In this document: positions 27,951 to 63,990 of the stretch, piece by piece
Layout: every line of letters begins with the position of its first letter
Position numbering within the stretch: position 1 is the stretch's first letter
NCBI RefSeq assembly: GCF_022045235.1
Contig: NW_027266282.1
Coordinates: forward strand, 4,960,001-5,024,000
Length of the DNA stretch: 64,000 nt
DNA from: Haliotis cracherodii
Taxonomy: Eukaryota
Reading direction: 5' to 3'
Notes under the pieces: model-generated
Seen by the model: only the letters and a program-made list of their open reading frames with translations
Database searches by the model: none
What the model was told of the DNA's origin: nothing
Position numbers and translations under genes: made by a program

Positions 27951-28215
27951 TTGGTTGGTTTGTTGTTTTACGCCGCACTAAGCAATATTCCAGCTATATG
28001 GCGGCGGTCTGTAAATAATCGAGTCTGGACCAGATAATCCAGTGATTGATATCATGAGCATCAATACACGCAACTGGGATCGATGACATGCATCAACCAA
28101 GTTAGCGAGCCTGACCACCCGATCCCGTTAGTCGCCTTTTACGACAAGCATAGTCGCCTTTTATGGCAAGCATGGGTTGCTGAAGACCTATTCTACCCCG
28201 GAATCTTCACGGGTC
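27951..28215 (-). mobile_element. Full-length SINE family B
   Basis: Perfect 12-bp TSD TGAAGTGAGAGA (27939-27950, 28216-28227); (CAAC)n-like tail; many copies in the window. Confidence 0.88.
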
Positions 28216-37002: not shown

Positions 37003-39636
37003 TCACGTTCTGCCTGCATGGTTAAATATAGCAAAAACAAACAGATGCGGTTGATTACCTGACACAAACAGTCTGTTTGATGATATGGCCAAACACCGAG
37101 GTGACACCAGATCATCACTCAATGTTGAATGACTGCACAGCTGTTCACCCCCAGCGCTAAACACGTGGATCTGATTCTGTCTGGGATCAGCAACATACAG
37201 GTTATTCCTCTTATCCATGCATGTGCCCTCTGGATACCACTCTGTGGCATTTGGAGGTCTGAAGGTTCGGACAAGGGTTCCATTCTTTTTAACCTGGAAG
37301 ACGGCACCTGGTTGGTTCAAGGAGCTGATCAGAAGGTCGTCCTCGTTACTGAGAGATATAGCAGCTATAGGGCCATCGACAGGAGCTTGTTGGGTTGTGA
37401 TCATTTGGCCATCTGTGTTGCAAAGCAACAGCAAGTTGCCTGGGAGATTTCCAACCAAGAACTGTGTAGAGGTATACCTGCAAAGAACTACATGTTTGCT
37501 GCCTGTTGTTCTGAGCATCACTGATCGTAGACACTTAAGAATCCTATCAGTGATATAGATCGTTGATCCACACATGTACACAACACAGTCATCCAAACAG
37601 GCAATTGTGTGAGCGGGCAGATCATCAGCTAGTGGTGTATTTTTGTGGTTCATATCAGTTAAAGTTCCACATGTAGTCATCGCCCTTATTTTCTTATTGG
37701 CATTGTCTGCAATAACAAGTTTGTCATTTAAGATTCCCAATGACTTTATTTCTGGATCTCGGGTGTCTTTGGTAACTTTTAATTTACAAATATTCATTTT
37801 CTTTAAGGTAACTGATCTGATAGAATTACTTCCGTCTTCAACAGATACAGCAGAACGGAGTTGTTGGTTTGCTTCTGGTATCACTTTTGAGGTAACTACA
37901 TTTCCGGGGACCTTCTGTTTGTCATCAAAAGAGTGTGCAGATGCACCAGAGCTGTTTAACCCCGAAGGTCCAAACCTGTCTCCTGTCATAGGTCCAAATG
38001 TCTTCAGTGGTTCTGAAGAATCCCTTTTCATACATTCGGAGGTCATCGTTGCATCTGAGATATCTCCATTCCAACATTCCGAGGTCATCAGTGAATCGGA
38101 GGTATCTCCATTCCTGCATTCGGAGGTCATCGGTGAATCGGAGGTATCACCATTCATGCGTTTGGAGGTCATCGGTGAATCAGGCACACCTTTATCCATA
38201 GGTTCGGTCATCAGGGAATCCGGGGTAACTTCTTGCCTAATGACATTCTGTGCAAAGACTTCCACATTTGTTGAATCCTCAAGCTTCAAGCTCATGCTAT
38301 TGAGTGGACCCTCAGATGGATGTCCAGAAGAACAACACCCTGATGAAAGGGCTTTCCCAGCTTCACCTACTATCATCAAAGACTCTGTCAACTTGAATCC
38401 ACTGTAGTCTTCCTGCTGACAGGTTTCAGGTCTAAGTGAAGTTGAAGAAGAAACGTCTTTCATCCCCTCAGCTTGTTTCCTAGATGGTATAGTCTCATCC
38501 TTCTTGATATCTTCATCACCTACGACGGGATTTTGAAACGAATGTGTGATGCTGATGACAGATTTCGGAGGGACATCACATCTAACATCAAACACAGGCA
38601 TTTTCAGTTTAGGAGCAAAGACATCAGTGGCATCTTGTAATTGCTTACTTTCTGTGAAACATTTCTCAAGGTCATTGTGAAGAATGAGAACTGCCACATC
38701 CTGCCCCGATCTTAAAACTAAGTTTGTAAGAGACAACAGTTTTGGGCACAGATTTGATATCTGCTCTAAATAAGTGTTTACCGTACTTGTGAGTTTAAGC
38801 TGCTGGTCACATAATTTTGAAAGCTTTTTTACAGCTTCTTGCTCCTGTTTTAGAATTAAATCCACAGCTGTCTGTGTCTTGTACCTGATACTTTTAAGTG
38901 CAGCCTCTTGTATTGAAGAAATATCTCGCTCCAGGTTCCGGAACCTTTCCAACTTAGGAGTTGCAGATTCAGTCATATATGTGCTAAGCTGTTGTGATCG
39001 CTCTTTCAATTTCGTTGCACAGTTCTGGGCAGCCTCATCCAAGGTAAGAATCGCATGACCTTTATGTTGAAATAACAAACACAACTCACAAATTGGAATG
39101 ACACAGGACTGACAGAAGTATGCATAAGCCCTTCCCCTATGATTGGCATCACCACAAGGAAAGCTTCTTGTCTTTGCCTCGACAACATATTTCCCAGTTT
39201 TCACATCTCTAATGGCCACGACCCTGTGTGAGTAAGTGGCGCTTGATGCTTGGTGCCCTGCCTGACACACACCACACAGAACATCGCCACAGTCAACACA
39301 CTGGTGGGTCACGTCATTGCGCTGGTTGTGTAGGCAACAAACGCTGCAATATTCACCCTCGGGTTTGAATAACAGCTCTTCTAACGTACGAGAGGCATTT
39401 TTAATACATGTATTTAACTGTGATCGCAGACTGTCCGTTTCGTCAGAGCATTGTGTGTTTGTTTCACACACAGGACAGTAGATGTGTTTATCCATGCTGA
39501 ATGATTGATGGACTTCAAGACACTTTCGGCAAACTGTGTGGTAACAGGCTAGAGTAACGGGGCCTGGTGTCTTCTCCTTGCAGTTGGTACAGTAAAAGAC
39601 ATTGGACGCTTTGTCTGTTGAGGCAAGCATCGCCAT
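37003..39636 (-). CDS. TRIM-NHL protein, 877 aa, intact copy A of the tandem trio
   Basis: RING CTNC..CYHTVCRKC..CPVC, two B-boxes, coiled coil, linker with 14-aa repeats, complete NHL propeller (LVIADNANKKI, WYPEGTCMDKRNNLYVADPRQNQIHVF, SPRCLAIS). First ATG is at 39636; the ORF-track start at 39651 is a TTG just after an in-frame TAA and a splice acceptor. Confidence 0.9.
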   Translation of the reverse strand: MAMLASTDKASNVFYCTNCKEKTPGPVTLACYHTVCRKCLEVHQSFSMDKHIYCPVCETNTQCSDETDSLRSQLNTCIKNASRTLEELLFKPEGEYCSVCCLHNQRNDVTHQCVDCGDVLCGVCQAGHQASSATYSHRVVAIRDVKTGKYVVEAKTRSFPCGDANHRGRAYAYFCQSCVIPICELCLLFQHKGHAILTLDEAAQNCATKLKERSQQLSTYMTESATPKLERFRNLERDISSIQEAALKSIRYKTQTAVDLILKQEQEAVKKLSKLCDQQLKLTSTVNTYLEQISNLCPKLLSLTNLVLRSGQDVAVLILHNDLEKCFTESKQLQDATDVFAPKLKMPVFDVRCDVPPKSVISITHSFQNPVVGDEDIKKDETIPSRKQAEGMKDVSSSTSLRPETCQQEDYSGFKLTESLMIVGEAGKALSSGCCSSGHPSEGPLNSMSLKLEDSTNVEVFAQNVIRQEVTPDSLMTEPMDKGVPDSPMTSKRMNGDTSDSPMTSECRNGDTSDSLMTSECWNGDISDATMTSECMKRDSSEPLKTFGPMTGDRFGPSGLNSSGASAHSFDDKQKVPGNVVTSKVIPEANQQLRSAVSVEDGSNSIRSVTLKKMNICKLKVTKDTRDPEIKSLGILNDKLVIADNANKKIRAMTTCGTLTDMNHKNTPLADDLPAHTIACLDDCVVYMCGSTIYITDRILKCLRSVMLRTTGSKHVVLCRYTSTQFLVGNLPGNLLLLCNTDGQMITTQQAPVDGPIAAISLSNEDDLLISSLNQPGAVFQVKKNGTLVRTFRPPNATEWYPEGTCMDKRNNLYVADPRQNQIHVFSAGGEQLCSHSTLSDDLVSPRCLAISSNRLFVSGNQPHLFVFAIFNHAGRT

Positions 39637-39651
39637 TGTGGCCACCTTCAA

Positions 39652-42600
39652 TTATGCCCTAAAAAAGAGGAGAATTTGAACTGTTACATTGTTTGTCAGC
39701 ACTGAAAGATCTTGTACCTCCTGCTTGTGGAATGATCTTTACAGGAAGCCATGATAAAGCTGGACTATTGCTGACTGTGGTGCAACACATTTTTTACCTC
39801 ACTTGCATCAAAATGGAGCGCAGGGGTACTTACATTGCCAAGATCGGATACTTGTTTGACTCTGAAATATCGTCTTTTTTTAAACAGAAAACAGCATCAA
39901 GACTCTGTGGCTCTCAAAGTATGGATGTTCTAGGAAGTGTAATCTTAAGCGAAGTTAGGGAAGTGTGGGTGTTAAATGGCTGTGTGATTTCTTCTTTTTA
40001 AGTAAGGGGACTCCTTTTAGCTTTAAAGTGTTAAAGCCCATTTCACCTCACCTTTTACTGTATAGAACATTAATATGGTAGCATTATTGTAAAGCATCAT
40101 CTCATTTGTAAAAGCAGTCTCTGAGCTGAAAGATTTTCTTAGTAAGCATCATCATCAACATTAGCCCAGATTAGTGCTACATTTTCAACAAAATAATATC
40201 TCTCAGCATTTTAGTTTCTGAGAAGATGATACTTTATTATGATCAGCGATTAATGAAATCTGTTTCGGTCTGAAAAGAGTGACATCATCCTTGCCCCGTG
40301 GGTTCTTTTTAGCTGTAGTGTCACGAACGAATCTGAAAACATGTGTGTTGCTGCCCCTGATATCCATGTAAGATCGGTGCGGTAGCCTGGTGGTTCAAGC
40401 ATTTGCTCATCAGGACAAAGTTGTTTCCCACTACAGTGTTTCCCTACATGGGCACAATGTGTGAAGCCCATGTCTGGTTTTCCCCGCCATGATATTGCAG
40501 GAATATTGCTAAAAGCGGTCTAAATCCATACTCACTCACACACTCATGTCCATGTTACAGATCTCAAGACCGTGTGAGATCTGAGGTGAAGAGTCTTTAT
40601 ATGTTTTTATACTTTTATTTTGTGTTCATTTTTCTTCAAAAAGAAATACTTCAACTCCATGATGAAATATGAGCACATGAGTCTTCCAAAAATTGAAAGG
40701 TCGTTCCTTCAGCCAGTTCGGAGAAGAAATTGAAACTTAATGGATGAATAGACTGTCCTGCTGAGCTAACAAAAAGATAAGTCCAAAATTGTGCTGTGGC
40801 CATATATTATGGATAACAATCAAATGTGTCTGGAACAAAAGTACCACCATCCTCTATTGTTTCAAACAGAATGTTTTACAAAGGACAAAAGACCGCGGAC
40901 TCTTGAAAATGAAATTTGAAGCAACATTTAGCGGACAAATTTCCACGATAAAAAGTAATCGAGTAAACATGTGCTTCACAGATCAATTACCATATCTGAT
41001 ATATGCGACACTAATCACATCGATAAACATCATATTGATTAATTTATTGCATGACATACGCTGCCTGCAACAATAATGCTCTGTACCATTGCTGACAGGT
41101 TTTGTCAGTTTCTAAGACTTTGTTTGTCGTCATATACAAAAACACTGTATCATTTCTTTCAACCGACTGAGATTTTTTTAAAAATTATACTTTCCACTCG
41201 AAACGTTTTGATCAAGAAATCTGGTACATAAAAAAAACAAAGTTTAAAGAGAGGGGTACTTCAGGTGATATCATATCCGATGGCGGGTCGATTTATATAT
41301 CAGTATATCAATATGGAATATTATCAAACACAGTAGTGTGTTGGGGTCATTTGAGTAAATCCACTGCCACTGAGCTTCGCAACTGTGGGCCTCTATACAA
41401 TGGTTATGGTGAAGATGACTCTAGTAGCATTTGAAACCCGGCTTTAATTGTTCCATATCACTCTAAAATGAGAAGGTAACGTCATTTGTAAATTATTCGT
41501 GACAAATGATGTAATTCGTTCAATACCTTTCAAGGGTATACTTCTTTCAGTCCCCCTAGCTACCTCCTGGGAACGAATTGAGTTTTCTTACTAAACATGT
41601 CTCTCAGTTTTCAATGAAGATCGCTTTTATTTAGAAAATATGTATTATAATGAGCAATATCATTCTGACCTTTAAATTACACAGAATTGATAGATATCGT
41701 TACAGCATACAGTAAAGTATATATTTAAAGTCTTGTGTAAGAAATAGTAAACATTACATACCTGTGGGTCTAATTGTGCTCATTTATCCAACATGTATGG
41801 CATGCACATTTTGCCATCTCTGTTTGTAATCCGTTCAAAATGGCGGGTTTAATTTAGATCTGCCGTTCAGTGATTTCCTAGGTTTAGTGGTAGCGAGAAG
41901 TAAGATCTGATTTTAATGATACTGGTCTTTTACCAACTGATCTCACTTTTTCTCCGTGCAACGATAAAAATGTCTATAAATTAGCGAAGGATACAGGTTA
42001 TTAAAACTCGCCCACCAACATTGTGTAAACGACATGCACCCCACCTAACCTGTGTATTGATAGCAGCTGCACATCGACCAACCATACCTACAGTAGCTCA
42101 CTATAACAACGTTATGTCATTATGACCCGATGTGCTCCACGTTCTTACCTCGATATAACGCTCGTCTGCGGATGAATCTATTTCTTTGTTTCCAAATGAC
42201 AAATACAACCGGCAGTGTAGAAGCTACGTGTGTGACAACTACGATGGTAGTGCTGTGCAGAACAACAATAACATGAATGCAAATCCTCCTTAAATTCTTA
42301 TATGCCCGCGAATTCAATAATTCTAGGAAAGACACACTTTCCTTGAACAGCAACGTGAACAGGTCGAAACACGATGCGGAGTGTAGAATTTAAATATAAA
42401 ACGTCACCGTCACAGAATATTCAGTCTCGGTTATCCGCCGAAACAGATCCTTTGGGTGTAAACGGTAAAATAGCTTAACTGTGACAATTAAAAGAACACA
42501 TCACTGAATGACAACCCCAAATAAGGACAAAAATACTAAAAGGTGAACTGCTAAATGATAAAACGAAATATGCGTTACTGGAGCGTTTGAATGTTTTTTC

Positions 42601-43150
42601 TTTGGAAGATGGCAATATCAATTATTAATATTTATTTTAGGCTATTGTTGATTTAAGTTTTTCGTTTTTCTTCCTCCTGTTACCAACTGATGCAGGTCTG
42701 GGACTCGAACCCACAATCATAGGATCCTGGCATGTGTAAGGGATGCAACTGTGCACAGCGATTTTCCGCGCCTTAGATGACTGAGCCAATCATGCATATT
42801 CGCGTAAAATAGAACGCATTGTTTGTCGAGCAGATTGTTTTATTTAGTCAACGAAAAATCAAAGTAAAATATGTTTATTGTTCGAAATGTGGTCATGTAT
42901 AAGGCATGTACGCCTCGCAAACATTTACTTCCAACCTGGAGCTGGTGTGTTGCTTCTTACGCTCTTCATGTGGTTAGTTTGTTTGTTGCTCTCGCCTGTG
43001 AATAAGCGGATCTGAGACAGACAAACCAGTGGTTGATATTATGACCAACGTCCCACGACATCGGAGTAGGATGACACGCAATCAACAAAGTCACCGACCC
43101 AAACAGAGCCTGACCCTATGACTCAATTACGTCGCACCTGAAACAACAAT
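39652..43150. repeat. Duplicated intergenic spacer, copy 1 (near-identical to 46752-49288 apart from a 1-kb segment, 39787-40782)
   Basis: Base-by-base collinearity, e.g. 40783-43150 with about 46931-49288. Confidence 0.92.
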
Positions 43151-43727
43151 AGGTCTGAAGGTTCGGGCAAGGGTTCCATTCTTTTTAACCTTTAAGACGG
43201 CACCTGGTTGGTTCAAGGAGCTGATCAGAAGGTCGTCCTCGTTACTGAGAGATATAGCAGCTATAGGGCCATCGACAGGAGCTTGTTGGGTTGTGATCAT
43301 TTGGCCATCTGTGTTGTAAAGCCACAGCAAGTTGCCTGGGAGATTTCCAACCAAGACCTGTGTGGAGGTATGCCTGCAAAGAACTACATGTTTGCTGCCT
43401 GTTCTGAGCATCACTGATCGTAGACACTTAAGAATCCTATCAGTGATATAGATCGTTGATCCACACATGTACACAACACAGTCATCCAAACAGGCAATTG
43501 TGTAAGAGGGCAGATCAGCAGTTAGTAGTGTATCTTTGTGGTTCATTTCAGTTAAAGTTCCACATGTAGTCATCACCCTTATTTATTTATTGGCATTGTC
43601 TGCAATAAAAAGTTTGTAATTCAAGATTCCCAATGATTTTATTTCTGGATCTCGGGTGTCTTTGGCATCTGTTTATATACAAATATTCATCTTCTCCAGG
43701 CTAACTGATCTCTAATCCCCTCCGTCC
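43151..43727 (-). pseudogene. Decaying NHL-coding remnant of TRIM copy B
   Basis: Homologous to about 37255-37840, but out of frame with the main ORF; in-frame TAG (43712-43714) and TAA (43583-43585); 3' part deleted. Confidence 0.88.
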
Positions 43728-46700
43728 TCAAGAGATACGGCAGCGGAGTGGGTTTTCTTCTCGTGTCGTGTCTTGAGTCTGCCTGTTCCCTGGTCCTGCC
43801 AGAATCATGTATGGAGTTTGGCTGTTCCCTGGTCCTGCCGGAATCATGTATCTAGTGTGGTTGTTTCCTTGTCCAGCTGACATCGTGTCTTGCGTTTGGC
43901 TGTTTCCTGGTCCAGCTAGGATCATGTCTGGAGTCTCGATGTTCCCTGGTCTAACTGACATCTTGTCTGGAGTCCCACTGTTCCCTGGTCTAACTGACAT
44001 GGTGTCTGGAGTCCCACTGTTCCCTGGTCTAACTGACATGGTGTCTGGAGTCCCACTGTTCCCTGGTCTAACTGACATCTTGTCTGGAGTCCCACTGTTT
44101 CCTGGTCTAACTGACATGGTGTCTGGAGTCCCACTGTTCCCTGGTCTAACTGACATGGTGTCTGGAGTCCCACTGTTCCCTTGTCTAACTGACATTTTGT
44201 CTGGAGTCCCACTGTTCCCTGGTCTAACTGACATGGTGTCTGGAGTCCCACTGTTCCCTGGTCTAACTGACATCTTGTCTGGAGTCCCACTGTTCCCTGG
44301 TCTAACTGACATGGTGTCTGGAGTCCCACTGTTCCCTAGTCTAACTGACATCTTGTCTGGAGTCCCACTGTTCCCTGGTCTAACTGACATCTTGTCTGGA
44401 GTCCCACTGTTCCCTGGTCTAACTGACATGGTGTCTGGAATCCCACTGTTCCCTTGTCTAACTGACATGGTGTCTGGAGTCCCACTGTTCCCTGGTCTAA
44501 CTGACATCTTGTCTGGAGTCCCACTGTTCCCTGGTCTAACTGACATCTTATCTTGAGTCTCGATGTTTCCTGGTCTAACTGACATGGTGTCTGGAGTCTC
44601 ACTGTTCCCTGGTCTAACTGACATCTTGTCTGGAGTCCCACTGTTCCCTGGTCTAACTGACATCTTGTCTGGAGTCCCTCTGTTTCCTGGTCTAACTGAC
44701 ATCTTGTCTGGAGTCCCACTGTTCCCTGGCCTAACTGACATCTTGTCTGGAGTCCCACTGTTCCCTGGTCTAACCGACATCTTATCTTGAGTCTCGATGT
44801 TTCCTGGTTCAGCTGGGGTCATGCCTGTAGTATCACTGTTCCCTGGTCCAGATGCATTAGTGACTACATTTCGATGGGCTTTCTGTTTGTCATCAAACGT
44901 TTGTACAGATGCAGAGCTGTCTAACCCAATAGGTCCATACCTAGAGCTGTCTTCTGTCATAGGTGCAGATGTAATCAGTGAATCTGAGCTATCTCCATTC
45001 ATAGGTTCGGTCATCAGGGAATCCGGGGTAACTTCTTGCCCAATGGCATTCTGTGCAAAGACTTCCACATTTGTTGAATCCACAAGCCTTGAGTTCATAT
45101 CGTTGAGTGGTTCCTCAGATGGATGTCCAGAAGAACAACACCTTGATAAAAGGGCTTTCCCAGCCTCACCTACTATCATCAAAGACTCGGTCAACTTGAA
45201 CCCACTGTAGTCTTCCTGCTGACAGGTGTCGCTGTCATTTCTCATATACACTGATGCTGTACCATCTTCTGCAGAACCCTCGGCGACAAGGTTCTCGTTG
45301 CTACACAAAACATCAGTGATGATAAATCCAGTTTTGGAAGGTTCAAACTTCACTCTTGGAGCAACAATGGCAAACGGGATCCCACTTACCGTTTCACCAG
45401 CCAGACATTTGCTCACGGTGTCAGACAAGTGAAGATTAGATTTGGCAATGGGGGTTTTAGGTCTAAGTGAAGTTGAAGAAGAAACGTCTTTCATCCCCTC
45501 AGCTTGTTTCCTGGTTAAACCATCCCCAGACTTGGCAGTACTCCCTGGATAAGTGCTTGATACAGAACTGCGGGACTCGCCACATGGTATAGTCTCATCC
45601 TTCTTGATATTTTCATCACCTACGACGGCATTTTGAAACGAATGTGTAATGCTGATGACAGATTTCGGAGGGACATCACATCTAACATCAAACACAGGCA
45701 CTTTCAGTTTGGAAGCAAAGACATCAGTGGCATCTTGTAATTGCTTACTTTCTTTAAAACAACTCTCAAGGTCATTGTGAAGAATGAGAACTGCCACATC
45801 CTGCTCCGATCTTAAAACTAAGTTTGTAAGAGACAACAGTTTTGGGCACAGATTTGACATCTGCTCTAAATCAGTGTTTAAGGTACTTGTGAGTTTAAGC
45901 TGCCGGTCACATAATTTTGAAAGCTTTTTTACAGCTTCCTGCTCCTGTTTTAGAACTAAATCCACAGCTGTCTGTGTCTTGTTCCTGATACTTTTAAGTG
46001 CAGCCTCTTGTATTGAAGAAATATCACGCTCCAGGTTCCTGAACATTTCCAACTTAGGAGTAGCAGATTCAGTCACATATGTGCTAAGCTGTTGTGATCG
46101 CTCTTCCAATTTCGTTGCACAGTTCTGGGCAGCCTCATCCAAGGTAAGAATCACATGACCTTTATGTTGAAATAAAAAACACAATTCACAAATTGGAATG
46201 ACACAGGACTGACAGAAGTATGCACAAGCCCTTCCCCTATGATTGGTATCACCACAAGGAAAGCTTCTTGTCTTTGCCTCGACAACATATTTCCCAGTTT
46301 TCACATCTCTAATGGCCACGATCCTGTGTGAGTAAGTGGCGCTTGATGCTTGGTGCCCTGCCTGACACACACCACACAGAACATCGCCACAGTCAACACA
46401 CTGGCGGGTCACGTCATTGCGCTGGTTGTGTAGGCAACAAACGCTGCAATATTCACCCTCGGATTTGAATAACAGGTCTTCTAACGTACGAGAGGCATTG
46501 TCAATACATCTATTTAACTGTGATCGCAGACTGTCCGTTTCGTCAGAGCATTGTGTGTTTGTTTCACACACAGGACAGTAGATGTGTTTATCCACGCTGA
46601 ATGTTTGATGGAATTCAAGACACTTTCGGCAAACTGTGTGGTAACAGGCTAGAGTAACGGGGCCTGGTTTCTTCTCCTTGCAGTTGGTACAGTAAAAGAC

Positions 46701-46736
46701 ATTGGACGCTTTGTCTGTTGAGGCAAGCATCGCCAT
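43728..46736 (-). CDS. TRIM copy B: RBCC plus 28 x 13-aa repeat tail, no NHL, about 1002 aa
   Basis: Open ORF from ATG 46736; RBCC nearly identical to copies A and C; a 2-nt deletion near 43745 ends the frame just before the NHL. It could be a recently disabled gene. Confidence 0.72.
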   Translation of the reverse strand: MAMLASTDKASNVFYCTNCKEKKPGPVTLACYHTVCRKCLEFHQTFSVDKHIYCPVCETNTQCSDETDSLRSQLNRCIDNASRTLEDLLFKSEGEYCSVCCLHNQRNDVTRQCVDCGDVLCGVCQAGHQASSATYSHRIVAIRDVKTGKYVVEAKTRSFPCGDTNHRGRACAYFCQSCVIPICELCFLFQHKGHVILTLDEAAQNCATKLEERSQQLSTYVTESATPKLEMFRNLERDISSIQEAALKSIRNKTQTAVDLVLKQEQEAVKKLSKLCDRQLKLTSTLNTDLEQMSNLCPKLLSLTNLVLRSEQDVAVLILHNDLESCFKESKQLQDATDVFASKLKVPVFDVRCDVPPKSVISITHSFQNAVVGDENIKKDETIPCGESRSSVSSTYPGSTAKSGDGLTRKQAEGMKDVSSSTSLRPKTPIAKSNLHLSDTVSKCLAGETVSGIPFAIVAPRVKFEPSKTGFIITDVLCSNENLVAEGSAEDGTASVYMRNDSDTCQQEDYSGFKLTESLMIVGEAGKALLSRCCSSGHPSEEPLNDMNSRLVDSTNVEVFAQNAIGQEVTPDSLMTEPMNGDSSDSLITSAPMTEDSSRYGPIGLDSSASVQTFDDKQKAHRNVVTNASGPGNSDTTGMTPAEPGNIETQDKMSVRPGNSGTPDKMSVRPGNSGTPDKMSVRPGNRGTPDKMSVRPGNSGTPDKMSVRPGNSETPDTMSVRPGNIETQDKMSVRPGNSGTPDKMSVRPGNSGTPDTMSVRQGNSGIPDTMSVRPGNSGTPDKMSVRPGNSGTPDKMSVRLGNSGTPDTMSVRPGNSGTPDKMSVRPGNSGTPDTMSVRPGNSGTPDKMSVRQGNSGTPDTMSVRPGNSGTPDTMSVRPGNSGTPDKMSVRPGNSGTPDTMSVRPGNSGTPDTMSVRPGNSGTPDKMSVRPGNIETPDMILAGPGNSQTQDTMSAGQGNNHTRYMIPAGPGNSQTPYMILAGPGNRQTQDTTREENPLRCRIS
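43758..44849 (-). repeat. Coding 39-bp VNTR, 28 units (RPGNSGTPD(K/T)MSV)
   Basis: Units counted from the translation; 28 x 39 = 1092 nt. Confidence 0.95.
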
Positions 46737-46751
46737 TGTGGCCACCTTCAA

Positions 46752-49288
46752 TTATGCCCTAAAAAAGAGGAGAATTTGAACTGTTACATTGTTTGTCAGC
46801 ACTGTTAGATCTTGTACAGTTCGAATCAATGGTTATTCCGGGGCAGAGTAGGCCCCTTGAACCTCCTGCTTGTGGGATGATCTTTACAGGAAGCCATGAT
46901 AAAGCTGGACTATTGCTGACTGTGGTGCAACCAAAATTGTGCTGTGGCCATATATTATGGATAAAAATCAAATGTGTCTGGAACAAAAGTACCACCATCC
47001 TCTATTGTTTCAAACAGAATGTTTTACAAAGGACAAAAGACCGCGGACTCTTGAAAATGAAATTTGAAGCAACATTTAGCGGACAAATTTCCACGATAAA
47101 AAGTAATCGAGTAAACATGTGCTTCACAGATCAATTACCATATCTGATATATGCGACACTAATCACATCGATAAACATCATATTGATTAATTTATTGCAT
47201 GACATACGCTGCCTGCAACAATAACGCTCTGTACCATTGTTGACAGGTTTTGTCAGTTTCTAAGACTTTGTTTGTCGTCATATACAAAAACACTGTATCA
47301 TTTCTTTCAACCGACTGAGATTTTTTTTTAAATTATACTTTCCACCCGAAACGTTTTGATCAAGAAATCTGGTACATAAAAAAACAAAGTTTAAAGAGAG
47401 GGGTACTTCAGGTGATATCATACCCGATGGCGGGTCGATTTATATATCAGTATATCAATATGGAATATTATCAAACACAGTAGTGTGTTGGGGTCATTTG
47501 AGTAAATCCACTGTCACTGAGCTTCACTACTGTGGGCCTCTATAAAATGGTTAAGGTGAAGATGACTCTAGTAGCATTTGAAACCCGGCTTTAATTGTTC
47601 CATATCACTCTAAAATGAGAAGGTAACGTCATTTGTAAATTATTCGTGACAAATGATGTAATTCGTTCAATACCTTTCAAGGGTATACTTCTTTCAGTCC
47701 CCCTAGCTACCTCCTGGGAACGAATTGAGTTTTCTTACTAAACATGTCTTTCAGTTTTCAATGAAGATCGCTTTTATTTAGAAAATATGTATTATAATGA
47801 GCAATATCATTCTGACCTTTAAATTACACAGAATTGATAGATATCGTTACAGCATACAGTAAAGTATATATTTAAAGTCTTGTGTAAGAAATAGTAAACA
47901 TTACATACCTGTGGGTCTAATTGTGCTCATTTATCCAACATGTATGGCATGCACATTTTGCCATCTCTGTTTGTAATCCGTTCAAAATGGCGGGTTTAAT
48001 TTAGATCTGCCGTTCAGTGATTTCCTAGGTTAAGTGGTAGCGAGAAGTAAGATCTGATTTTAATGATATTGGTCTTTTACCAACTGATCTCACTTTTTCT
48101 CCGTGCAACGATAAACATTTCTATAAATTAGCGACGGATACAGGTTTTTAAAACTCGCCCACCAACATTGTGTAAACGTCATACATCCCACCTATTGTGT
48201 ATTGATAGCAGCTGCACATCGACCAACCATACCTACAGTAGCTCACTATAACAACGTTATGTCATTGTGACCCGATGTGCTGCACGTTCTTACCTCGATA
48301 TAACGCTCGTCTGCGGATGAATCTATTTCTTTGTTTCCAAATGACAAATACAACCGGCAGTGTAGAAGCTACGTTTGTGACAACTACGATGGTAGTGCTG
48401 TGCAGAACAACAATAACATGAATGCAAATCCTCCTTAAATTCTTATATGCCCGCGAATTCAATAATTCTAGGAAAGACACACTTTCCTTGAACAGCAACG
48501 TGAACAGGTCGAAACACGATGCGGAGTGTAGATTTTAAATATAAAACGTCACCGTCACAGATTATTCAGTCTCGGTTATCCGCCGAAACAGATCCTTTGG
48601 GTGTAAACGGTAAATTAGCTTAATTGTGACAATTAAAAGAACACATCACTGAATGACAACCCCAAATAAGGACAAAAATACTAAAAGGTGAACTGCTAAA
48701 TAATAAAACGAAATATGCGTTACTGGAGCGTTTGAATGTTTTTTCTTTGGAAGATGGCAATATCAATTATTAATATTTATTTTAGGCTATTGTTGATTTA
48801 AGTTTTTCTTCTTCCTGTTACCAACTGATGCAGGTCTGGGACTCAAACCCACAATCATAGGATCCTGGCATATGTAAGGGATGCAACTGTGCACAGCGAT
48901 TTTCCGCGCCTTAGATGACTGAGCCAATCATGCATATTCGCGTAAAATAGAACGCATTGTTTGTCGAGCAGATTGTTTTATTTAGTCAACGAAAAATCAA
49001 AGTAAAATATGTTTATTGTTCGAAATGTGGTCATGTATAAGGCATGTACGCCTCGCAAACATTTACTTCCAACCTGGAGCTGGTGTGTTGCTTCTTACGC
49101 TCTTCATGTGGTTAGTTTGTTTGTTGCTCTCGCCTGTGAATAAGCGGATCTGAGACAGACAAACCAGTGGTTGATATTATGACCAACGTCCCACGACATC
49201 GGAGTAGGATGACACGCAATCAACAAAGTCACCGACCCAAACAGAGCCTGACCCTATGACTCAATTACGTCGCACCTGAAACAACAAT
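46752..49288. repeat. Duplicated intergenic spacer, copy 2
   Basis: Near-identical to 39652-43150. Confidence 0.92.
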
Positions 49289-49813
49289 AGGTCTGAAGGT
49301 TCGGGCAAGGGTTCCATTCTTTTTAACCTCGAAGACGGCACCTGGTTGGTTCAAGGAGCTGATCAGAAGGTCGTCCTCGTTACTGAGAGATATAGCAGCT
49401 ATAGGGCAACAGCAAGTTGCCTGGGAGATTTCCAACCAAGACCTGTGTGGAGGTATGCCTGCAAAGAACTACATGTTTGCTGCCTGTTCTGAGCATCACT
49501 GATCGTAGACACTTAAGAATCCTACCAGTGATATAGATCGTTGATCCATACATGTACACAACACAGTCATCCAAACAGGCAATTGTGTGAGCGGGCAGAT
49601 CATCAGTTAGTGGTGTATCTTTGTGGTTCATTTCAGTTAAAGTTCCACATGTAGTCATCGCCCTTATTTTTGTTATTGGCATTGTCTGCAATAACAAGTT
49701 TGTAATTCAAGATTCCCAATGATTTTATTTCTGGATCTTGGGTGTCTTTGGCAACTGTTTATATACAAATATTCATCTTCTCCAGGCTAACTGATCTCTA
49801 ATCCCCTCCATCC
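49289..49813 (-). pseudogene. Decaying NHL-coding remnant of TRIM copy C
   Basis: Shares the TAG (49798-49800) and the 3' deletion with copy B; private +1 frameshift near 49667 and 53-bp deletion near 49407. Confidence 0.88.
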
Positions 49814-52800
49814 TCAAGAGATACGGCAGCGGCGTGGGTTTTCTTCTCGTGTCGTGTCTTGAGTCTGCCTGTTCCCTGGTCCTGCCGGAATCATGTCTTG
49901 AGTCTGCCTGTTCCCTGGTCCTGCCGGAATCATGTATGGAGTCTGCCTGTTCCCTGGTCCTGCCGGAATCATGTATGGAGTCTGCCTGTTCCCTGGTCCT
50001 GCCGGAATCATGTATGAAGTCTGGCTGTTCCCTGGTCCTGCCGGAGTCATGTATGGAGTCTGGCTGTTCCCTGGTCCAGCTGGGATCATGTATCTAGTGT
50101 GGTTGTTTCCTGGTCCAGCTGACATCGTGTCTTGAGTCTGCCTGTTCCCTGGTCCTGCCGGAATCATGTATGGAGTCTGCCTGTTCCCTGGTCCTGCCGG
50201 AATCATGTATGGAGTCTGGCTGTTCCCTGGTCCAGCCGGAATCATGTATGGAGTCTGGCTGTTCCCTGGTCCTGCCGGAATCATGTATGGAGTCTGGCTG
50301 TTCCCTGGTCCAGCTGGGACCATGTATCTAGTCTGGTTGTTTCTTGGTCCAGCTGACATCGTGTCTTGCGTTTGGCTGTTCCCTGGTCCAGCTGACATCT
50401 TGTCTTGAGTCTCGAAATTTCCTGGTCTAATTGACATGGTGTCTGGAGTCCCACTGTTCCCTGGTCTAACTGACATCTTGTCTGGAGTCCCACTGTTTCC
50501 TGGTCTAACTGACATCTTATCTTGAGTCTCGATGTTTCCTGGTCTAAGCGACATGGTGTCTGGAGTCCCACTGTTCCCTGGTCTAACTGACATCTTGTCT
50601 GGAGTCCCTCTGTTCCCTGGTCTAACTGACATGGTGTCTGGAGTCCCACTGTTCCCTGGTCTAACTGACATCTTGTCAGGAGCCCTTCTGTTCCCTGGTC
50701 TAACTGACATCTTATCTTGAGTCTCGATGTTTCCTGGTCTAACTGACATGGTGTCTGGAGTCCCACTGTTCCCTGGTTTAACTGACATCTTGTCTGGAGT
50801 CCCACTGTTTCCTGGTCTAACTGATATGGTGTCTGGAGTCCCACTGTTCCCTGGTCTAACTGACATCTTGTCAGGAGCCCTTCTGTTCCCTGGTCTAACT
50901 GACATCTTATCTTGAGTCTCGATGTTCCCTGGTCTAACTGACATGGTGTCTTGAGTCCCACTGTTCCCTGGTCTAACTGACATCTTGTCTGGAGTCCCAC
51001 TGTTCCCTGGTCTAACTGACATGGTGTCTGGAGTCTCACTGTTTCCTGGTCTAACTGACATCTTGTCTGGAGTCTGGCTGTACCCTGGTCTAACTGACAT
51101 CTTGTCTGGAGTCCCACTGTTTCCTGGTCTAACTGACATGGTGTCTGGAGTCTCACTGTTTCCTGGTCTAACTGACATCTTGTCTGGAGTCCCACTGTTC
51201 CCTGTTCTAACTGACATCTTGTCTGGAGTCCCACTGTTCCCTGGTCTAACTGACATCTTGTCTGGAGTCCCACTGTTTCCTGGTCTAACTGACATCTTGT
51301 CTGGAGTCCCACTGTTTCCTCGTCTAACTGACATGGTGTCTGGAGTCTCACTGTTTCCTGGTCTAACTGACATGGTGTCTGGAGTCTCACTGTTTCCTGG
51401 TCTAACTGACATCTTGTCTGGAGTCCCACTGTTTCCTCGTCTAACTGACATGGTGTCTGGAGTCCCACTGTTTCCTCGTCTAACTGACATGGTGTCTGGA
51501 GTCTCACTGTTTCCTGGTCTAACTGACATGGTGTCTTGAGTCCCACTGTTCCCTGGTCTAATTGACATGGTGTCTGGAGTCCCACTGTTCCCTGGTCTAA
51601 CTGACATCTTGTCTGGAGTCCCAATGTTCCCTGGTCTAACTGACATCTTGTCTGGTGTCCCACTGTTCCCTGGTCTAACTGACATGTTGTCTGGAGTCCC
51701 ACTGTTCCCTGGTCTAACTGACATCTTGCCTGGAGTCCCACTGTTTCCTGGTCTAACTGACATGGTGTCTGGATTCTCACTGTTCCCTGGTCTAACTGAC
51801 ATGGTGTCTGGAGTCTCACTGTTTCCTGGTCTAACTGACATGGTGTCTGGAGTCTCACAGTTCCCTGGTCTAACTGACATCTTATCATGAGTCGCGATGT
51901 TTCCTGGTTCAGCTGGGGTCATGCCTGTAGTATCACTGTTCCCAGGTCCAGATACATTAGTGACTACATTTTGATGGGCTTTCTGTTCGTCATCAAACTT
52001 TTGTACAGATGCAGAACTGTCTAACCCAAAAGGTCCATACCTAGAGCTGTCTAACCCAACAGGTCCATACCTAGAGCTGTCTTCTGTCATAGGTCCAGAT
52101 GTAATCAGTGAATCTGAGCTATCTCCATTCATTTTTCTAGAGATCATCGGTGAATCTGGCACACCTCTATCCATAGGTTCGGTCATCAGGGAATCCGGGG
52201 TAACTTCTTGCCTAATGGCATTCTGTACAAAGATTTCCACATTTGTTGAATCCTCAAGCTTCAAGCTCATGCTATTGAGTGGACCCTCAGATGGATGTCC
52301 AGAAGAACAACACCTTGATAAAAGGGCTTTCCCAGCTTCACCTACTATCATCAAAGACTCGGTCAACTTGAACCCACTGTAGTCTTCCTGCTGACAGGTG
52401 TCGCTGTCATTTCTCATATACACTGATGCTGTACCATCTTCTGCAGAACCCTCGGCGACAAGGTTCTCGTTGCTACACAAAACATCAGTGATGATAAATC
52501 CAGTTTTGGAAGGTTCAAACTTCACTCTTGGAGCAACAATTGCAAACGGGATCCCACTTACCGTTTCACCAGCCAGACATTTGCTCTCGGTGACAGACAA
52601 GTGAGGATTAGATTTGGCAATGAGAGTTTTAGGTCTAAGTGAAGATGAAGAAAAAACGTCTTTCATCCCCTCAGCTTGTTTCCTGGTTAAACCATCCCCA
52701 GGCTTGGCAGTACTCCCTGGATAAGTGCTTGATACAGAACTGCGGGACTCCTCACATGGTATAGTCTCATCCTTCTTAATATCTTCATCACCTACGACGG

Positions 52801-53908
52801 CATTTTGAAACGAATGTGTGATGCTGATGACAGATTTCGGAGGGACATCACATCTAACATCAAACACAGGCACTTTCAGTTTGGAAGCAAAGACATCAGT
52901 GGCATCTTGTAATTGCTTACTTTCTTTAAAACAACTCTCAAGGTCATTGTGAAGAATGAGAACTGCCACATCCTGCCCCGATCTTAAAACTAAGTTTGTA
53001 AGAGACAACAGTTTTGGGCACAGATTTGACATCTGCTCTAAATCAGTGTTTAAGGTACTTGTGAGTTTAAGCTGCCGGTCACATAATTTTGAAAGCTTTT
53101 TTACAGCTTCCTGCTCCTGTTTTAGAACTAAATCCACAGCTGTCTGTGTCTTGTTCCTGATACTTTTAAGTGCAGCCTCTTGTATTGAAGAAATATCACG
53201 CTCCAGGTTCCTGAACATTTCCAACTTAGGAGTAGCAGATTCAGTCACATATGTGCTAAGCTGTTGTGATCTCTCTTCCAATTTCGTTGCACAGTTCTGG
53301 GCAGCCTCATCCAAGGTAAGAATCACATGACCTTTATGTTGAAATAAAAAACACAATTCACAAATTGGAATGACACAGGACTGACAGAAGTATGCACAAG
53401 CCCTTCCCGTATGATTGGCGTCACCACAAGGAAAGCTTCTTGTCTTTGCCTCGACAACATATTTCCCAGTTTTCACATCTCTAATGGCCACGACCCTGTG
53501 TGAGTAAGTGGCGCTTGATGCTTGGTGCCCTGCCTGACACACACCACACAGAACATCGCCACAGTCAACACACTGGTGGGTCACGTCATTGCACTGTTTG
53601 TGTAGGCAACAAACGCTGCAATATTCACCCTCGGGTTTGAATAACAGGTCTTCTAACGTACGAGAGGCACTGTCAATACATGTATTTAACTGTGATCGCA
53701 GACTGTCCGTTTCGTCAGAGCATTGTGTGTTTGTTTCACACACAGGACAGTAGATGTGTTTATCCACGCTGAATGATTGATGGACTTCAAGACACTTTCG
53801 GCAAACTGTGTGGTAACAGGCTAAAGTAACGGGGCCTGGTTTCTTCTCCTTGCAGTTGGTACAGTAAAACACTTTGGACGCTTTGTCTGTTGAGGCAAGC
53901 ATCGACAT
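49814..53908 (-). CDS. TRIM copy C: RBCC plus 54 x 13-aa repeat tail, no NHL, about 1364 aa
   Basis: Uninterrupted 4.1-kb ORF from ATG 53908 with intact RING and B-box ligands; same terminal frameshift as copy B. Confidence 0.72.
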   Translation of the reverse strand: MSMLASTDKASKVFYCTNCKEKKPGPVTLACYHTVCRKCLEVHQSFSVDKHIYCPVCETNTQCSDETDSLRSQLNTCIDSASRTLEDLLFKPEGEYCSVCCLHKQCNDVTHQCVDCGDVLCGVCQAGHQASSATYSHRVVAIRDVKTGKYVVEAKTRSFPCGDANHTGRACAYFCQSCVIPICELCFLFQHKGHVILTLDEAAQNCATKLEERSQQLSTYVTESATPKLEMFRNLERDISSIQEAALKSIRNKTQTAVDLVLKQEQEAVKKLSKLCDRQLKLTSTLNTDLEQMSNLCPKLLSLTNLVLRSGQDVAVLILHNDLESCFKESKQLQDATDVFASKLKVPVFDVRCDVPPKSVISITHSFQNAVVGDEDIKKDETIPCEESRSSVSSTYPGSTAKPGDGLTRKQAEGMKDVFSSSSLRPKTLIAKSNPHLSVTESKCLAGETVSGIPFAIVAPRVKFEPSKTGFIITDVLCSNENLVAEGSAEDGTASVYMRNDSDTCQQEDYSGFKLTESLMIVGEAGKALLSRCCSSGHPSEGPLNSMSLKLEDSTNVEIFVQNAIRQEVTPDSLMTEPMDRGVPDSPMISRKMNGDSSDSLITSGPMTEDSSRYGPVGLDSSRYGPFGLDSSASVQKFDDEQKAHQNVVTNVSGPGNSDTTGMTPAEPGNIATHDKMSVRPGNCETPDTMSVRPGNSETPDTMSVRPGNSENPDTMSVRPGNSGTPGKMSVRPGNSGTPDNMSVRPGNSGTPDKMSVRPGNIGTPDKMSVRPGNSGTPDTMSIRPGNSGTQDTMSVRPGNSETPDTMSVRRGNSGTPDTMSVRRGNSGTPDKMSVRPGNSETPDTMSVRPGNSETPDTMSVRRGNSGTPDKMSVRPGNSGTPDKMSVRPGNSGTPDKMSVRTGNSGTPDKMSVRPGNSETPDTMSVRPGNSGTPDKMSVRPGYSQTPDKMSVRPGNSETPDTMSVRPGNSGTPDKMSVRPGNSGTQDTMSVRPGNIETQDKMSVRPGNRRAPDKMSVRPGNSGTPDTISVRPGNSGTPDKMSVKPGNSGTPDTMSVRPGNIETQDKMSVRPGNRRAPDKMSVRPGNSGTPDTMSVRPGNRGTPDKMSVRPGNSGTPDTMSLRPGNIETQDKMSVRPGNSGTPDKMSVRPGNSGTPDTMSIRPGNFETQDKMSAGPGNSQTQDTMSAGPRNNQTRYMVPAGPGNSQTPYMIPAGPGNSQTPYMIPAGPGNSQTPYMIPAGPGNRQTPYMIPAGPGNRQTQDTMSAGPGNNHTRYMIPAGPGNSQTPYMTPAGPGNSQTSYMIPAGPGNRQTPYMIPAGPGNRQTPYMIPAGPGNRQTQDMIPAGPGNRQTQDTTREENPRRCRIS
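49844..51949 (-). repeat. Coding 39-bp VNTR, 54 units, two subtypes (RPGNSGTPDKMSV then GPGNSQTPYMIPA)
   Basis: Units counted from the translation; 54 x 39 = 2106 nt. Confidence 0.95.
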
Positions 53909-54134: not shown

Positions 54135-54233
54135 CAACGTCACGGAGTATTTCATACGTTGAGCAATGTCATGAAGTGTTTCATACGGTGAGCAATGTCA
54201 CTGAGTGTTTCATACGTTGAGCAATGTCACGGA
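54135..54233. repeat. 29-bp minisatellite, block 1 (gtttcatacgttgagcaacgtcacggagt)
   Basis: The same unit resumes at 60181-60350 and 61819-61940, i.e. one array split by insertions. Confidence 0.85.
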
Positions 54234-54570: not shown

Positions 54571-57500
54571 TACCATTACAAGCCCTCCCCCTGAATATCC
54601 CATGTTCACTCCCTTAGGTGCATATGTTTTGTATGTTGGCAACTTTGAAGATTTGATACTTATAACATTAAGGTTATTGCAATGACGTATTGACTTTCAT
54701 GTTTGTTTATGAGCGAAATAATAAAATGGTTGAATGTTGTCAGTGATTATTTGCATTTCATTTCAGGAACCAAGAACAATGGCCAGGCAAAGCCGATTAA
54801 CTACTTTGATCGGCAGTTGTCTGGTCCAGGTCCTGAGGGGGAACATTTGTACACCCTACTGGCCAACGAAACAAACAAGTATGCCTACAGCTGCTTGCGG
54901 GACCACACCCTTCCTCCACAGTCAAGACTCCAAGAATGGGAGCCAGTTGCAAATTCAGAAATGCGGGCATTTCTGGGCCTGGTACTGCTTATGGGACTGG
55001 TGAAGAAACCAACGATTTCCTCTTACTGGAATGAGGGGCTCACACACAGGTATGCTATTTAACACTTATAATTTATTATTACTTATAATGATATATTTAT
55101 GACATATATTTTTTCATGTCAGTTAAGCTATATCATATCATACCATTGTTTATGATGTCACAAATTGGTAATATTGCAGTTCATAGCAATTTCACTGAGG
55201 ATTGAGATTTCCTGTTCTGTTTTTCCACCTTTCATTAGTAGGCTTCATCAAATGATATATTATAAGATCAGGATTTTTTGTTATACTCTAGTTATTTCAG
55301 TTAAATTCAAACATTTTACTTTTTAAAAAATAACAGTAATATTTGTAGAGATTATTTCATAAATTAAGCTTATGATTTCTTTCAGACTTTCCAGGACACC
55401 AGGCTTCGGGGAGGTGATGACAAGAAACCGCTTCCAGTTGTTGCTCCACGTGATTCATGCAAGTGATAACGCGGAGCCAACTCCCCGAACACAGCCTGGT
55501 GATGAGCTCCTCGACAAGTTCAGACCAATGTTTGAACTTGTCAACAAGTCGTTCGCATCAAACTATCGGTATGTATTGTTTTAAGTGAAGGTAAGCAAGT
55601 TTATGTGTATTACTCCAAGATATCTAAGTGAACTTAAGAAACATCAGGTGTATCAAGCCATTCATATTGGTTTTGATAACATTCATATCAATCAGGATTT
55701 TTTAATGTATTCTTCATGAGGAAACATGTTAAATGCATAATGAACATATGTGTGTATATATATATTACAGGCTGGCCCGAGATGTTTGTGTGGATGAGAG
55801 GGTCGTTGGTTTCAAGGGAAGACACAAGCTGAAGCAGTACCTGGCCAACAAGAAGAAAGACAAGTGGGGTTTGCAGATGTGGGTTCTTGCTGAGTCTGAG
55901 TCTGGTTACACTCATCAGTTCCAGGCCTCCGTGGGCAGGAAACACGGATGTGCCAGACCACCCGGGAAACAGAATGTTGGACACCGGGTGGTCATGGAAC
56001 TGATGCAGCCTCATCTCAACAAGGGCCATCACGTCACCCTGGACAGTTACTTTTGCAGTCCTGGCCTTTGTCATGCTTTATATGACAAAGGCACGTTCTG
56101 CACAGGTACTGTAGCCGTTCGGAGACAAGGGATGCCCAAGTCCTTCAACGTACCAAAGAGGGGCTTGACGAGAGGACAAGCGACATCAAAGGTCCAGGGC
56201 CCACTGCTGGCAGTGCTCTGGCCCGACAGGAAGGTTTTTACCATGCTGACAACGCTTGGTACACCACGGTAAGATATTTTTACACAATGAACAAAGACAT
56301 TTATTCTAGAGAGCATTACATCATAACAAACATAATAAAAAATATGTAATATATTTTTACAGGGTTTTGTGTTAATATCAAATTAATATTTTCAGATGTT
56401 ATTTGTGACTTGTGATGAGATATTGTTTGGTTAATTTCAGTATGGAAGACTGCCCTAATGCTAAGGGACGGACCTTGAAGATCCCTTCTGTGGTAAACAT
56501 GTACAATCATACCATGGGAGGGGTAGATCTTGGTGACCAATTCATCAAGCTCTACGATCCAAGGCTCCGTTCCTGCAAGCTGTGGAGGAAGGCACTCTTT
56601 GAAGTCCTCCTCACAGCAGCAGGTATGTAGTAAACACTGTATGCATTGAGGAATAAGAATGCAGTGAAATTATTAAAGTCAAACAATTCAGTGATATGTA
56701 TTAATAGTAATCTTGTGTGTGTAATTTTTGTTGTTGTAGGATCTCATAGCTCAAAATATTTCTTATCTTCTTTCAGTCAATGCATACGTGGTGTACCAAC
56801 GCTGCTGGTTACAATCGAGAAAACTTGGTCGCTTGCCCTTTCAGGAATCCATTGTCGCTTCACTCGTAGGGGATCAAGTTACTTCAAGGAGTGCTTCTAA
56901 ACTTGGTCCAGCGCCCCATCCCCTACGATTGACCGGACGACATTTTCCAGGTGTTCTGCCTCAGAAGAAACGGAAGCAGTGTGCTGTATGCAGAGGACGG
57001 TCGCGAGTCAGGTCATGGTGTCCTGACTGCGGGGTTGGCCTCTGCATCAGCAACTGCTTCCGTGTTTACCATACAGTCCTTCAATTGCGTTCATCTGCAC
57101 CAAATGAAGAATAGACTATTCTTCATTAGCTGCAGATGAAATACTTTTAGAAACTGTTTCATCGCTGTTTTGAAAATTGTTTTATCCATATCACAGCGTC
57201 CAGTAAATCTGTGTTTAAACTGTTATGGTAGATCTTTTTATGATGGATTTTATTTATAACTTACATCATAAAAACTTTTTCTGGGGAGAAGCCCTACTTG
57301 TCTTTCATCTTGTACTGTAAAACTAAATACCAATCATGTGCTAATTGTAAATACTTTTTTGTCCATTTGTCTTTTGCATGCTGAGAGAAATAAATTTAAC
57401 ACCGCTTTAAACAGTATTTTCAGTTATATCACGGTGTGACATTTGTAAATACAATTTAATAATAAATGTTTCTTGAACATGTTGAGTTGACTTTTGGATT

Positions 57501-60180: not shown

Positions 60181-60350
60181 TTAAGCAACTTTTACGGAGT
60201 GTTTCATATGCTGAGCAACGTCACAGAGTGTTTCATACGTTGAGCAATGTCACGGAGTGTTTCATACGTTCAGCAACGTCACAGAGTGTTTCATACGTTG
60301 AGCAACGTCACGGAGTATTTCATACGTTGAGCAACGTCACGGAGTGTTTT
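60181..60350. repeat. 29-bp minisatellite, block 2
   Basis: About 6 units; the first is a TTAA-bearing variant. Confidence 0.85.
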
Positions 60351-61818: not shown

Positions 61819-61940
61819 ATACGTTGAGCAACGTCACAGTGTTTCATACGTTGAGCAACGTCACGGAGTATTTCATACGTTGAGCAATGTCACGGAGTGT
61901 TTCATACGTTGAGCAATGTCACAGAGTATGTCACGGGATA
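61819..61940. repeat. 29-bp minisatellite, block 3
   Basis: About 4 units continuing the interrupted array. Confidence 0.85.
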
Positions 61941-63732: not shown

Positions 63733-63990
63733 TCAGGTCTTCAGCAACCAATGCTTGCCGTAAAAGGTGACTATGCTTGTCATAAAAGGCGACTAACGGG
63801 ATCGGGTGGTCAGGGTCGCTGACTTGGTTGATGCATGTCATCGATCCCAATTGCGTGGGTCCATGCTCGTGATATTAATCACTGGATTGTCTGGTCCAGA
63901 CTCGATTATTTACAGACCGCCGTCATATAGCTGGAATATTGCTGAAAGCGGCGTTCAACAACCAACCAACCAACCAACCAACCAACCAAC
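63733..63990 (+). mobile_element. SINE family B copy with (CAAC)n tail
   Basis: Reverse complement of 27951-28215. Confidence 0.85.

Follow-up and report, generated by a model that had tools for sequence, protein, structure and literature searches.

Among the proteins of the tripartite motif (TRIM) family, those with an NHL propeller constitute class C-VII (TRIM2, TRIM3, TRIM32, TRIM71, Brat and Mei-P26), and those without any C-terminal domain constitute class C-V, for example TRIM56, TRIM8 and PML. TRIM13 and TRIM59 are anchored in membranes by a C-terminal transmembrane helix, and prenylated proteins end in CaaX boxes of the CCIQ or CQTS type. Coding minisatellites form the tails of neurofilament-H, with its KSP repeats, and of mucins, with their variable-number tandem repeats (VNTRs). 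The locus analysed here lies in a window of 64,000 nucleotides from the abalone Haliotis cracherodii (contig NW_027266282.1, positions 4,960,001 to 5,024,000; unless stated otherwise, coordinates count from the first letter of this window) and comprises a tandem trio of TRIM genes, A, B and C, with intronless coding sequences, all on the minus strand. On balance (probability about 0.62), B and C appear to represent an expressed lineage of Haliotis in which the RING, B-box and coiled-coil (RBCC) region is retained without a propeller and is followed by a repeat tail, and which was derived from a TRIM-NHL gene like A.

The locus shares its ancestry with the TRIM-NHL proteins, given that A keeps the RBCC region together with the NHL and that B and C carry a recognizable leftover of the latter, yet neither B nor C translates any NHL. 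Their domain layout places B and C in a known class, that of TRIMs with no C-terminal domain, and they resemble its class C-V members in that the RBCC region is followed by a region without a recognized domain. They differ from these in that this region is a young array of 28 to 54 near-identical units, which came about through truncation of a TRIM-NHL gene. If the terminal CRIS or CCIS were farnesylated, B and C would have a C-terminal tether as TRIM13 and TRIM59 do, although in the form of a lipid rather than a helix and so far as a motif only. With the neurofilament-H and mucin repeats they share in-frame, Ser/Thr-Pro-rich tandem units that easily change in copy number; there is no sequence relation between these tails, and that of B and C sits on an E3 ligase scaffold. 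What is new at the locus is the partial-duplication route, the tail in the form of a long, near-perfect coding minisatellite, the recurrence of this tail among abalone species and the CaaX-like end.

Layout of copies B and C and their counterparts in other abalones

The coding sequence of copy A (37003-39636, minus strand) is a complete single exon of 877 aa, with a RING, two B-boxes, a helix, a linker and the NHL, and the exact protein is present in the public protein collection. Copy B (43728-46736 including the stop, minus strand; 1002 aa from the ATG) and copy C (49814-53908 including the stop, minus strand; 1364 aa) encode an RBCC region about 95% identical to that of A, a linker of about 250 residues and a tail of 13-residue units, both proteins ending in ...RCRIS. 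In Pfam searches the RING (PF00097) scored 20.1 bits in B, marginal with respect to the cut-off of 21, and 21.7 bits in C, and the B-box (PF00643) scored 24.8 bits in B, above its cut-off of 24.1, and a marginal 22.7 bits in C; the first B-box (PF22586) was matched in A and B with scores under its cut-off. The Pfam domains of A are those of B and C plus an NHL repeat, for which there is no Pfam match in B or C, and no filamin domain was detected by Pfam in any of the three. In an alignment of nine relatives the eight RING ligand positions and all zinc-binding positions are invariant, and the Cys/His pattern of the B-boxes is conserved. An AlphaFold model of the RBCC region, of low confidence and built from a shallow alignment, presents residues 199-309 as one continuous helix followed by a second helix at 313-343, with predicted local distance difference test (pLDDT) values of 45-69; the first of these is, with low confidence, what a TRIM coiled coil would look like. 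B and C thus possess the C3HC4 RING and the B-boxes by which TRIM/RBCC proteins are defined and belong among the RBCC proteins; having no in-frame NHL propeller, they are not TRIM-NHL proteins.

The arrays (43758-44849 in B and 49844-51949 in C, both minus strand) were assigned 27.6 and 53.7 copies of a 39-bp unit by TRF, and when cut in register they resolve into 13-codon units, exactly 28 in B and 54 in C, with zero indels. Units of the type RPGNSGTPDKMSV fill the 5' and middle portions of the arrays (units 3-23 in B), and the type GPGNSQTPYMIPA, which differs from it at 11 of 39 nucleotides, lies at the 3' end, including the last units of B. At the position of these arrays A has a single unit-like stretch (VPGNVVTSKVIPE; 37873-37911, minus strand), with 19-21 of 39 nucleotides different from the array consensus units. 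The 39-bp unit was not found elsewhere in the 1.18-Gb assembly. An earlier note on this DNA, made by reading its letters alone, had proposed an intact RING/B-box/B-box/coiled coil in B and C, 28 and 54 coding units of 39 bp, and one unit-like stretch only in A; the RING and the B-boxes are upheld by the open reading frames (ORFs), Pfam and the alignment, the coiled coil is modelled, with low confidence, as a long helix, the counts agree exactly, and the single stretch in A is confirmed. The linker is in general prone to in-frame tandem duplication. A 42-bp array of 3.7 copies with MNGDTSDSPMTSEC units is found in the linker of A (38027-38181), and a 30-bp duplication of 2.3 copies is private to the linker of C (52013-52082).

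The strongest evidence is the occurrence of this layout in other abalone species. A complete protein of 933 aa from Haliotis asinina (XP_067662715.1; P0004) has the RING, the B-box, the same linker and about 18 units of the type SEPQNTESPDMIL, and no NHL. Its linker keeps parts lost from A and has a threefold duplication of its own. Its best matches in the genome studied here are B, C and A, with 68-69% identity in the RBCC region, the next locus having 44%. A partial model of 842 aa from Haliotis rufescens (XP_048245227.1; P0008), 90% identical to C, has the RBCC region, the linker and at least 14 units. The H. rufescens group was recovered by a full HMMER search, a word-based search with the tail and linker having returned only the H. 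asinina protein and A. Both proteins carry the NCBI name "uncharacterized protein", and one fragment of the group is named "TRIM56-like". They share with B and C the RBCC region, the linker, the tandem 13-residue units and the lack of an NHL, and differ from them in the sequence and number of the units. The earlier note had suggested searching proteomes for this combination, and in these two species it is found; the "new architecture" of that note is therefore a real layout, but NCBI already lists two proteins of this kind, and the lack of a C-terminal domain defines an established class of TRIMs. Our literature searches found nothing on abalone TRIMs or on an RBCC-plus-repeat-tail layout. The layout is a real genus-level variant of the TRIM family and is transcribed, at least from copy C (see below).

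Pro, Gly, Asn, Ser and Thr are abundant in the tail, and each unit contains one Thr-Pro (TPDK in many); MSVRPGNSGTPDK is the recurring tryptic peptide of the tail. A single-sequence AlphaFold model of the linker and tail has periodic short strands with pLDDT 50-58, the linker being under 40; the choice between disorder and a beta-solenoid, for which the earlier note had looked to structure prediction, is not settled by this model, which offers no confident fold. A search of the ESM Atlas with the tail returned just generic repeat proteins with scores under 0.8, and neither there nor in Pfam was a related repeat found in any characterized protein. A Pfam match to Cytadhesin_P30 was under its cut-off and due to proline-rich composition, and tail matches elsewhere in the genome were compositional (14-43% identity, many with stops); both were rejected as relatives. 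Judged by its sequence, the tail most probably forms a flexible spacer of low complexity, which may be phosphorylated and whose length readily changes by gain and loss of units.

The earlier note had gone further in suggesting that the variable-length repeat may serve as effector or recognition module, possibly within an innate-immune system of diversification. Several features would suit this idea: the number of units differs twofold between the paralogues and again between species; the RBCC region evolves fast, as that of immune TRIMs often does; and the gene is located in a cluster of TRIM-NHL-like genes. On the other side, variation among the units (8 synonymous to 22 non-synonymous variants and 7 to 18, where 27 to 86 are possible) has no excess of amino-acid changes over the neutral expectation, no confident fold of the tail or related repeat in characterized proteins was found, and the literature searches gave nothing on abalone TRIMs. 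We regard an immune diversification system as very improbable.

Loss of the propeller and origin of the repeat-tailed copies

Relative to A, the reading frame of B and C is shifted directly after common Leu-Arg codons, and a stop follows 9 codons past the last unit. In B the shift lies between 43744 and 43743, and this point and the last four codons, the CaaX-like CRIS, occupy 43731-43744 (minus strand). The shift consists of a 2-nt loss plus one codon lost immediately before it. The common 2-nt deletion to which the earlier note ascribed the end of both ORFs is thus present, but it is one of several common lesions, which include a TAA and the loss of the last 83 codons. Likewise, the claim that the repeat tail replaces the NHL holds to the extent that no NHL is translated, but an out-of-frame leftover of 577 bp in B (43151-43727, minus strand) and 525 bp in C (49289-49813, minus strand) persists after the stop. 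The leftover of B has two stops in the frame of A, the TAA common to both copies and one private to B, and that of C has, besides the common stop, an insertion of 1 nt and a deletion of 53 bp. The two leftovers break off abruptly at the codon that matches residue 794 of A, with the consequence that the last 83 codons of A are gone.

Errors of assembly, affecting either the frameshift or the lengths of the arrays, have to be considered given that long perfect arrays are hard to assemble and that the model from H. rufescens is incomplete within its array, the unit numbers given here being those of the assembly. Against this, the shift is common to B and C, several further lesions are present in the leftovers, and the end of the H. 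asinina protein matches the shift. Moreover, contigs of independent runs from three species cross the shift without an indel; those from two species other than that of the window (one DNA run and two RNA-like runs) cross both frameshift and stop, with the leftover in its undeleted form. The view of the earlier note that the 2-nt deletion is unlikely to be an assembly error is therefore sustained, and an artefact can be set aside as exceedingly improbable.

The A-B spacer (40783-43150) and the B-C spacer (46931-49288), the latter with 5' untranslated region (5'UTR) exons and dispersed repeats, share 98% identity, and the former marks the tandem unit. The end of the leftover of B at 43151 abuts the spacer, and the same spacer precedes C at 49289, so the tandem units, each a gene body with its upstream spacer, extend over 37255-43150, 43151-49288 and 49289 to about 54037. 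B and C lack a counterpart to the segment 35584-37255 of A. Because the leftovers abut 98%-identical spacers and this segment of A is missing from the other copies, B and C are partial tandem duplicates with a left breakpoint inside the NHL-coding region, from a copy born without the propeller end. The synonymous divergence of 0.025 between B and C points to a recent duplication of these two. A match of about 70% between the 3' flanks of A and B is due to a dispersed element with further copies at 27951-28115 and 63809-63976, and was not used for dating. About 1 kb directly upstream of A (39786-40783) is without a counterpart upstream of B and may be an insertion in the leader region of A.

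Divergence between A and the two duplicates is strongly mosaic. It is 1-5% in the RBCC region and about 2% in the distal leftover, and rises to 23-53% across the final portion of the linker, the last unit and the 120 nt that follow the shift; one block of 100 nt has C and A 3% apart, with B 13-14% from both. This alternation of near-identical flanks and a diverged core suggests gene conversion between neighbours. An old core of repeat and shift, whose flanks were homogenized by gene conversion with the neighbouring gene, would imply a single origin of the repeat-tailed form, which we consider the probable course of events. The converse possibility, that the expansion of the unit and the loss of the NHL frame occurred independently in H. 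asinina and in the present lineage, has in its favour that A is far closer to B and C in the flanks than any of them is to H. asinina, and that frameshifts of this phase, wherever they fall in the stretch, all lead to one stop. It accounts less readily for the diverged core, and the differences between the unit subtypes (11 of 39 nt) and between these and the unit of A (19-21 of 39 nt) are much above the divergence of the RBCC region. Furthermore, the distance from a conserved Asn to the stop is eight residues in both species. A recent truncation with a fast-changing core, accompanied by a separate event in H. asinina, fits the mosaic less well, and two origins are in our estimate the less probable alternative, albeit one of appreciable weight.

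The H. asinina protein ends in ...NCCIS, in the same register as the CRIS of B and C, and the sequence of A itself, if read in the shifted frame, gives Cys-Cys-Ile-Cys-stop. Both CRIS and the CCIS of H. asinina have the Cys at -4, the aliphatic residue at -2 and the Ser, Met, Ala or Gln at -1 by which a CaaX motif is recognized, and these last four residues are better conserved than the nine before them. They fit a farnesylation box, and prenylation is suggested by this motif match only. It is conceivable, though we think it unlikely, that the frameshift created a conserved CaaX box and that the products are RBCC ligases tethered to a membrane by farnesylation, the minisatellite then serving as a flexible spacer of variable length between the lipid anchor and the catalytic scaffold. 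We know of no description of such lipid anchoring of a TRIM, and a literature search combining tripartite motif, CAAX and farnesyl had no prenylated TRIM among the matches listed.

Transcription and maintenance of the reading frames

Contigs of four public sequencing runs were placed on 44830-49900, that is, the 5' part of B, the spacer and the 3' part of C, with long repeats excluded. Three of these runs are small and are called RNA by guess only, and the contigs give neither the ends nor the levels of transcripts. In the three RNA-like runs the ORF and the leftover are covered and the unique part of the spacer, 47040-47889, has zero depth; the DNA run covers that part. Two joints, 46757^47908 and 46757^48293, with GT..AG on the minus strand, are seen in the RNA-like runs and are absent from the DNA run. 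They connect an acceptor at 46757 (minus strand; a polypyrimidine tract and AG, 21 nt upstream of the ATG of B) with a 5'UTR exon at 47908-48066 (minus strand; donor CAG/GTATGT at 47908) or with an alternative 5'UTR exon at 48293-48393 (minus strand). The GT-AG joints, together with the sequences of acceptor and donor, therefore indicate one non-coding first exon and one coding exon. Near-identical copies of the two 5'UTR exons lie upstream of A at 41753-41921 and 42138-42255. Three pieces of the spacer (47890-48229, 48740-48909 and 49080-49249) reach contig depths in the thousands in every run and are on this account dispersed repeats; since the exon 47908-48066 sits inside the first of them, the leader may be transposon-derived.

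In the RNA-like run from the same species as the window (X12), contigs have the letters of C at the sites that separate C from A and B, in both the RBCC region and the linker. A contig of 621 nt corresponds to 49039-49659 with two mismatches and no gap across the private 53-bp deletion of C, and another, at 49673-49890, crosses the stop of C with one mismatch. Because these contigs carry the letters of C and span its deletion, copy C is transcribed with its stop and leftover inside the transcript, and as transcript contigs cover the leftover it acts as a 3' untranslated region (3'UTR). Absence of transcripts, which the earlier note had counted as fatal to its reading, thus does not hold for copy C, from which spliced transcript contigs were found. 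Letters like those of A at 46026-46062 indicate that A is also transcribed. A further X12 contig, joining 46120-46757 to 48293-48393, has a C-like RBCC region with four private differences, including Cys63 to Gly, and a 5' exon that is just 81% like that of B; it maybe stems from another allele or an unassembled copy.

The distribution of lesions suggests that the reading frames of B and C have been preserved. Since the split of the two copies, all three of the disabling lesions have fallen in the leftovers, whose share of the non-repeat sequence is 24% (P 0.013, or 0.003 if the common TAA is included); the 1.9 kb of non-repeat ORF in each copy has none, against 3-4 in each 0.6-kb leftover. 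Indels inside the ORFs are all multiples of 3, including both that are specific to B and C. Within this genome, then, the frame is protected, but constraint on the amino-acid sequence is weak or absent. The principal competing explanation holds that B and C are young transcribed pseudogenes, crippled by the partial duplication that gave rise to them, in which the minisatellite expanded neutrally and the ORF is open owing to its youth and to the stop-free frame of the unit. Consistent with this, dN/dS (the ratio of non-synonymous to synonymous substitution rates) is 0.6-1.0, variation among the units looks neutral, the other frames of the array are open too, neither copy is in the protein collection, and at a synonymous divergence of 0.025 few stops would be expected in any case (P of none 0.13). 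The confinement of disabling lesions to the NHL leftover, the in-frame nature of all ORF indels, the retention of all zinc-binding residues and the splicing of the transcript speak against it, as above all does H. asinina, in which an ORF with this layout is complete: its RBCC region is 68-69% identical, and its 933 codons are far too diverged to have stayed open without selection. Neither dN/dS nor the synonymous and non-synonymous counts within the arrays discriminate a maintained gene from a pseudogene, and we deem the pseudogene explanation unlikely overall.

Several observations nevertheless weigh against our interpretation of B and C as an expressed, propeller-less lineage. The pairwise dN/dS of the RBCC region is 0.98 for A and B, 0.60 for A and C and 0.68 for B and C, values that derive from 21-42 changes, and that of the linker is 0.56-0.88, so that the sequences offer no clear purifying signal; 0 stops among 53 substitutions between B and C is not unlikely under neutrality (P 0.13), and the within-array variation, as noted, looks neutral. 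The X12 contigs have a letter other than that of B at every site diagnostic for B, though contigs drop rare variants. The exact B and C ORFs are absent from the protein collection, unlike A. Both structure models are of low confidence, and dimerization, ligase activity and prenylation of B and C are matters of inference only.

Genomic surroundings and possible roles

The window belongs to a cluster of TRIM-NHL-like genes. Two divergent single-exon RING/B-box genes with an NHL-like C-terminus lie at 20992-23127 (minus strand) and 28400-30688 (plus strand), with RBCC regions that are 62% identical to each other and 24% identical to that of A. Between them is a tandem array of 24 copies of a 44-bp unit (26589-27642), and about 500 bp downstream of the former is one of 7.6 copies of a 39-bp unit (20180-20475); both lie outside ORFs and are unrelated in sequence to the unit of B and C. 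Upstream of C, where homology to the spacer of B stops, is a fragment of a piggyBac-type transposase ORF (55733-56272, plus strand; PF13843, E 7e-37), and a single family of 29-bp units recurs in three short arrays scattered likewise upstream of C (54135-54230, 60194-60349 and 61819-61933). About 70 kb past the window, at contig positions 5093779-5094900 (plus strand), is a paralogue with an open frame of 840 codons and 44% RBCC identity to the repeat-tailed H. asinina protein; it is probably the counterpart of an NHL-type protein of that species (P0003).

Returning to the expressed propeller-less lineage, its history and likely function are as follows. A TRIM-NHL gene like A underwent a partial tandem duplication with a breakpoint inside the NHL region, leaving a product in which the RING, the first and second B-boxes, a long putative coiled-coil helix, the linker of about 250 residues and the minisatellite of 13-residue units succeed each other up to the short CRIS end. 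The remaining NHL, out of frame, is decaying in what is now the 3'UTR. From what is known of TRIM proteins, the RING, the B-boxes and an antiparallel coiled-coil dimer would preserve the capacity for E3 activity and oligomerization, the substrate-binding propeller being gone. The B and C proteins could then engage other targets through the linker and tail, or act as partners or modulators of A. Self-dimers would be possible, and mixed dimers with A probable given the near-identity of the RBCC regions, in which case the valency of A would be altered.

No long-standing open question is affected by these findings. Its mosaic divergence recommends the locus as a compact case in which to study gene conversion in invertebrate TRIM clusters, and if the CaaX-like end is genuine, lipid anchoring would join the known means by which TRIMs are localized. 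On the whole, the locus offers a clean natural example of a change of TRIM class: the propeller is cut by a partial duplication, and a linker unit grows into a minisatellite within the coding sequence. Several abalone species transcribe the resulting gene with its reading frame open; its neighbour has retained the propeller. Should the proteins be made, abalones would possess paired complete and propeller-less ligases with near-identical dimerization regions, in which modulation through mixed dimers would be testable.

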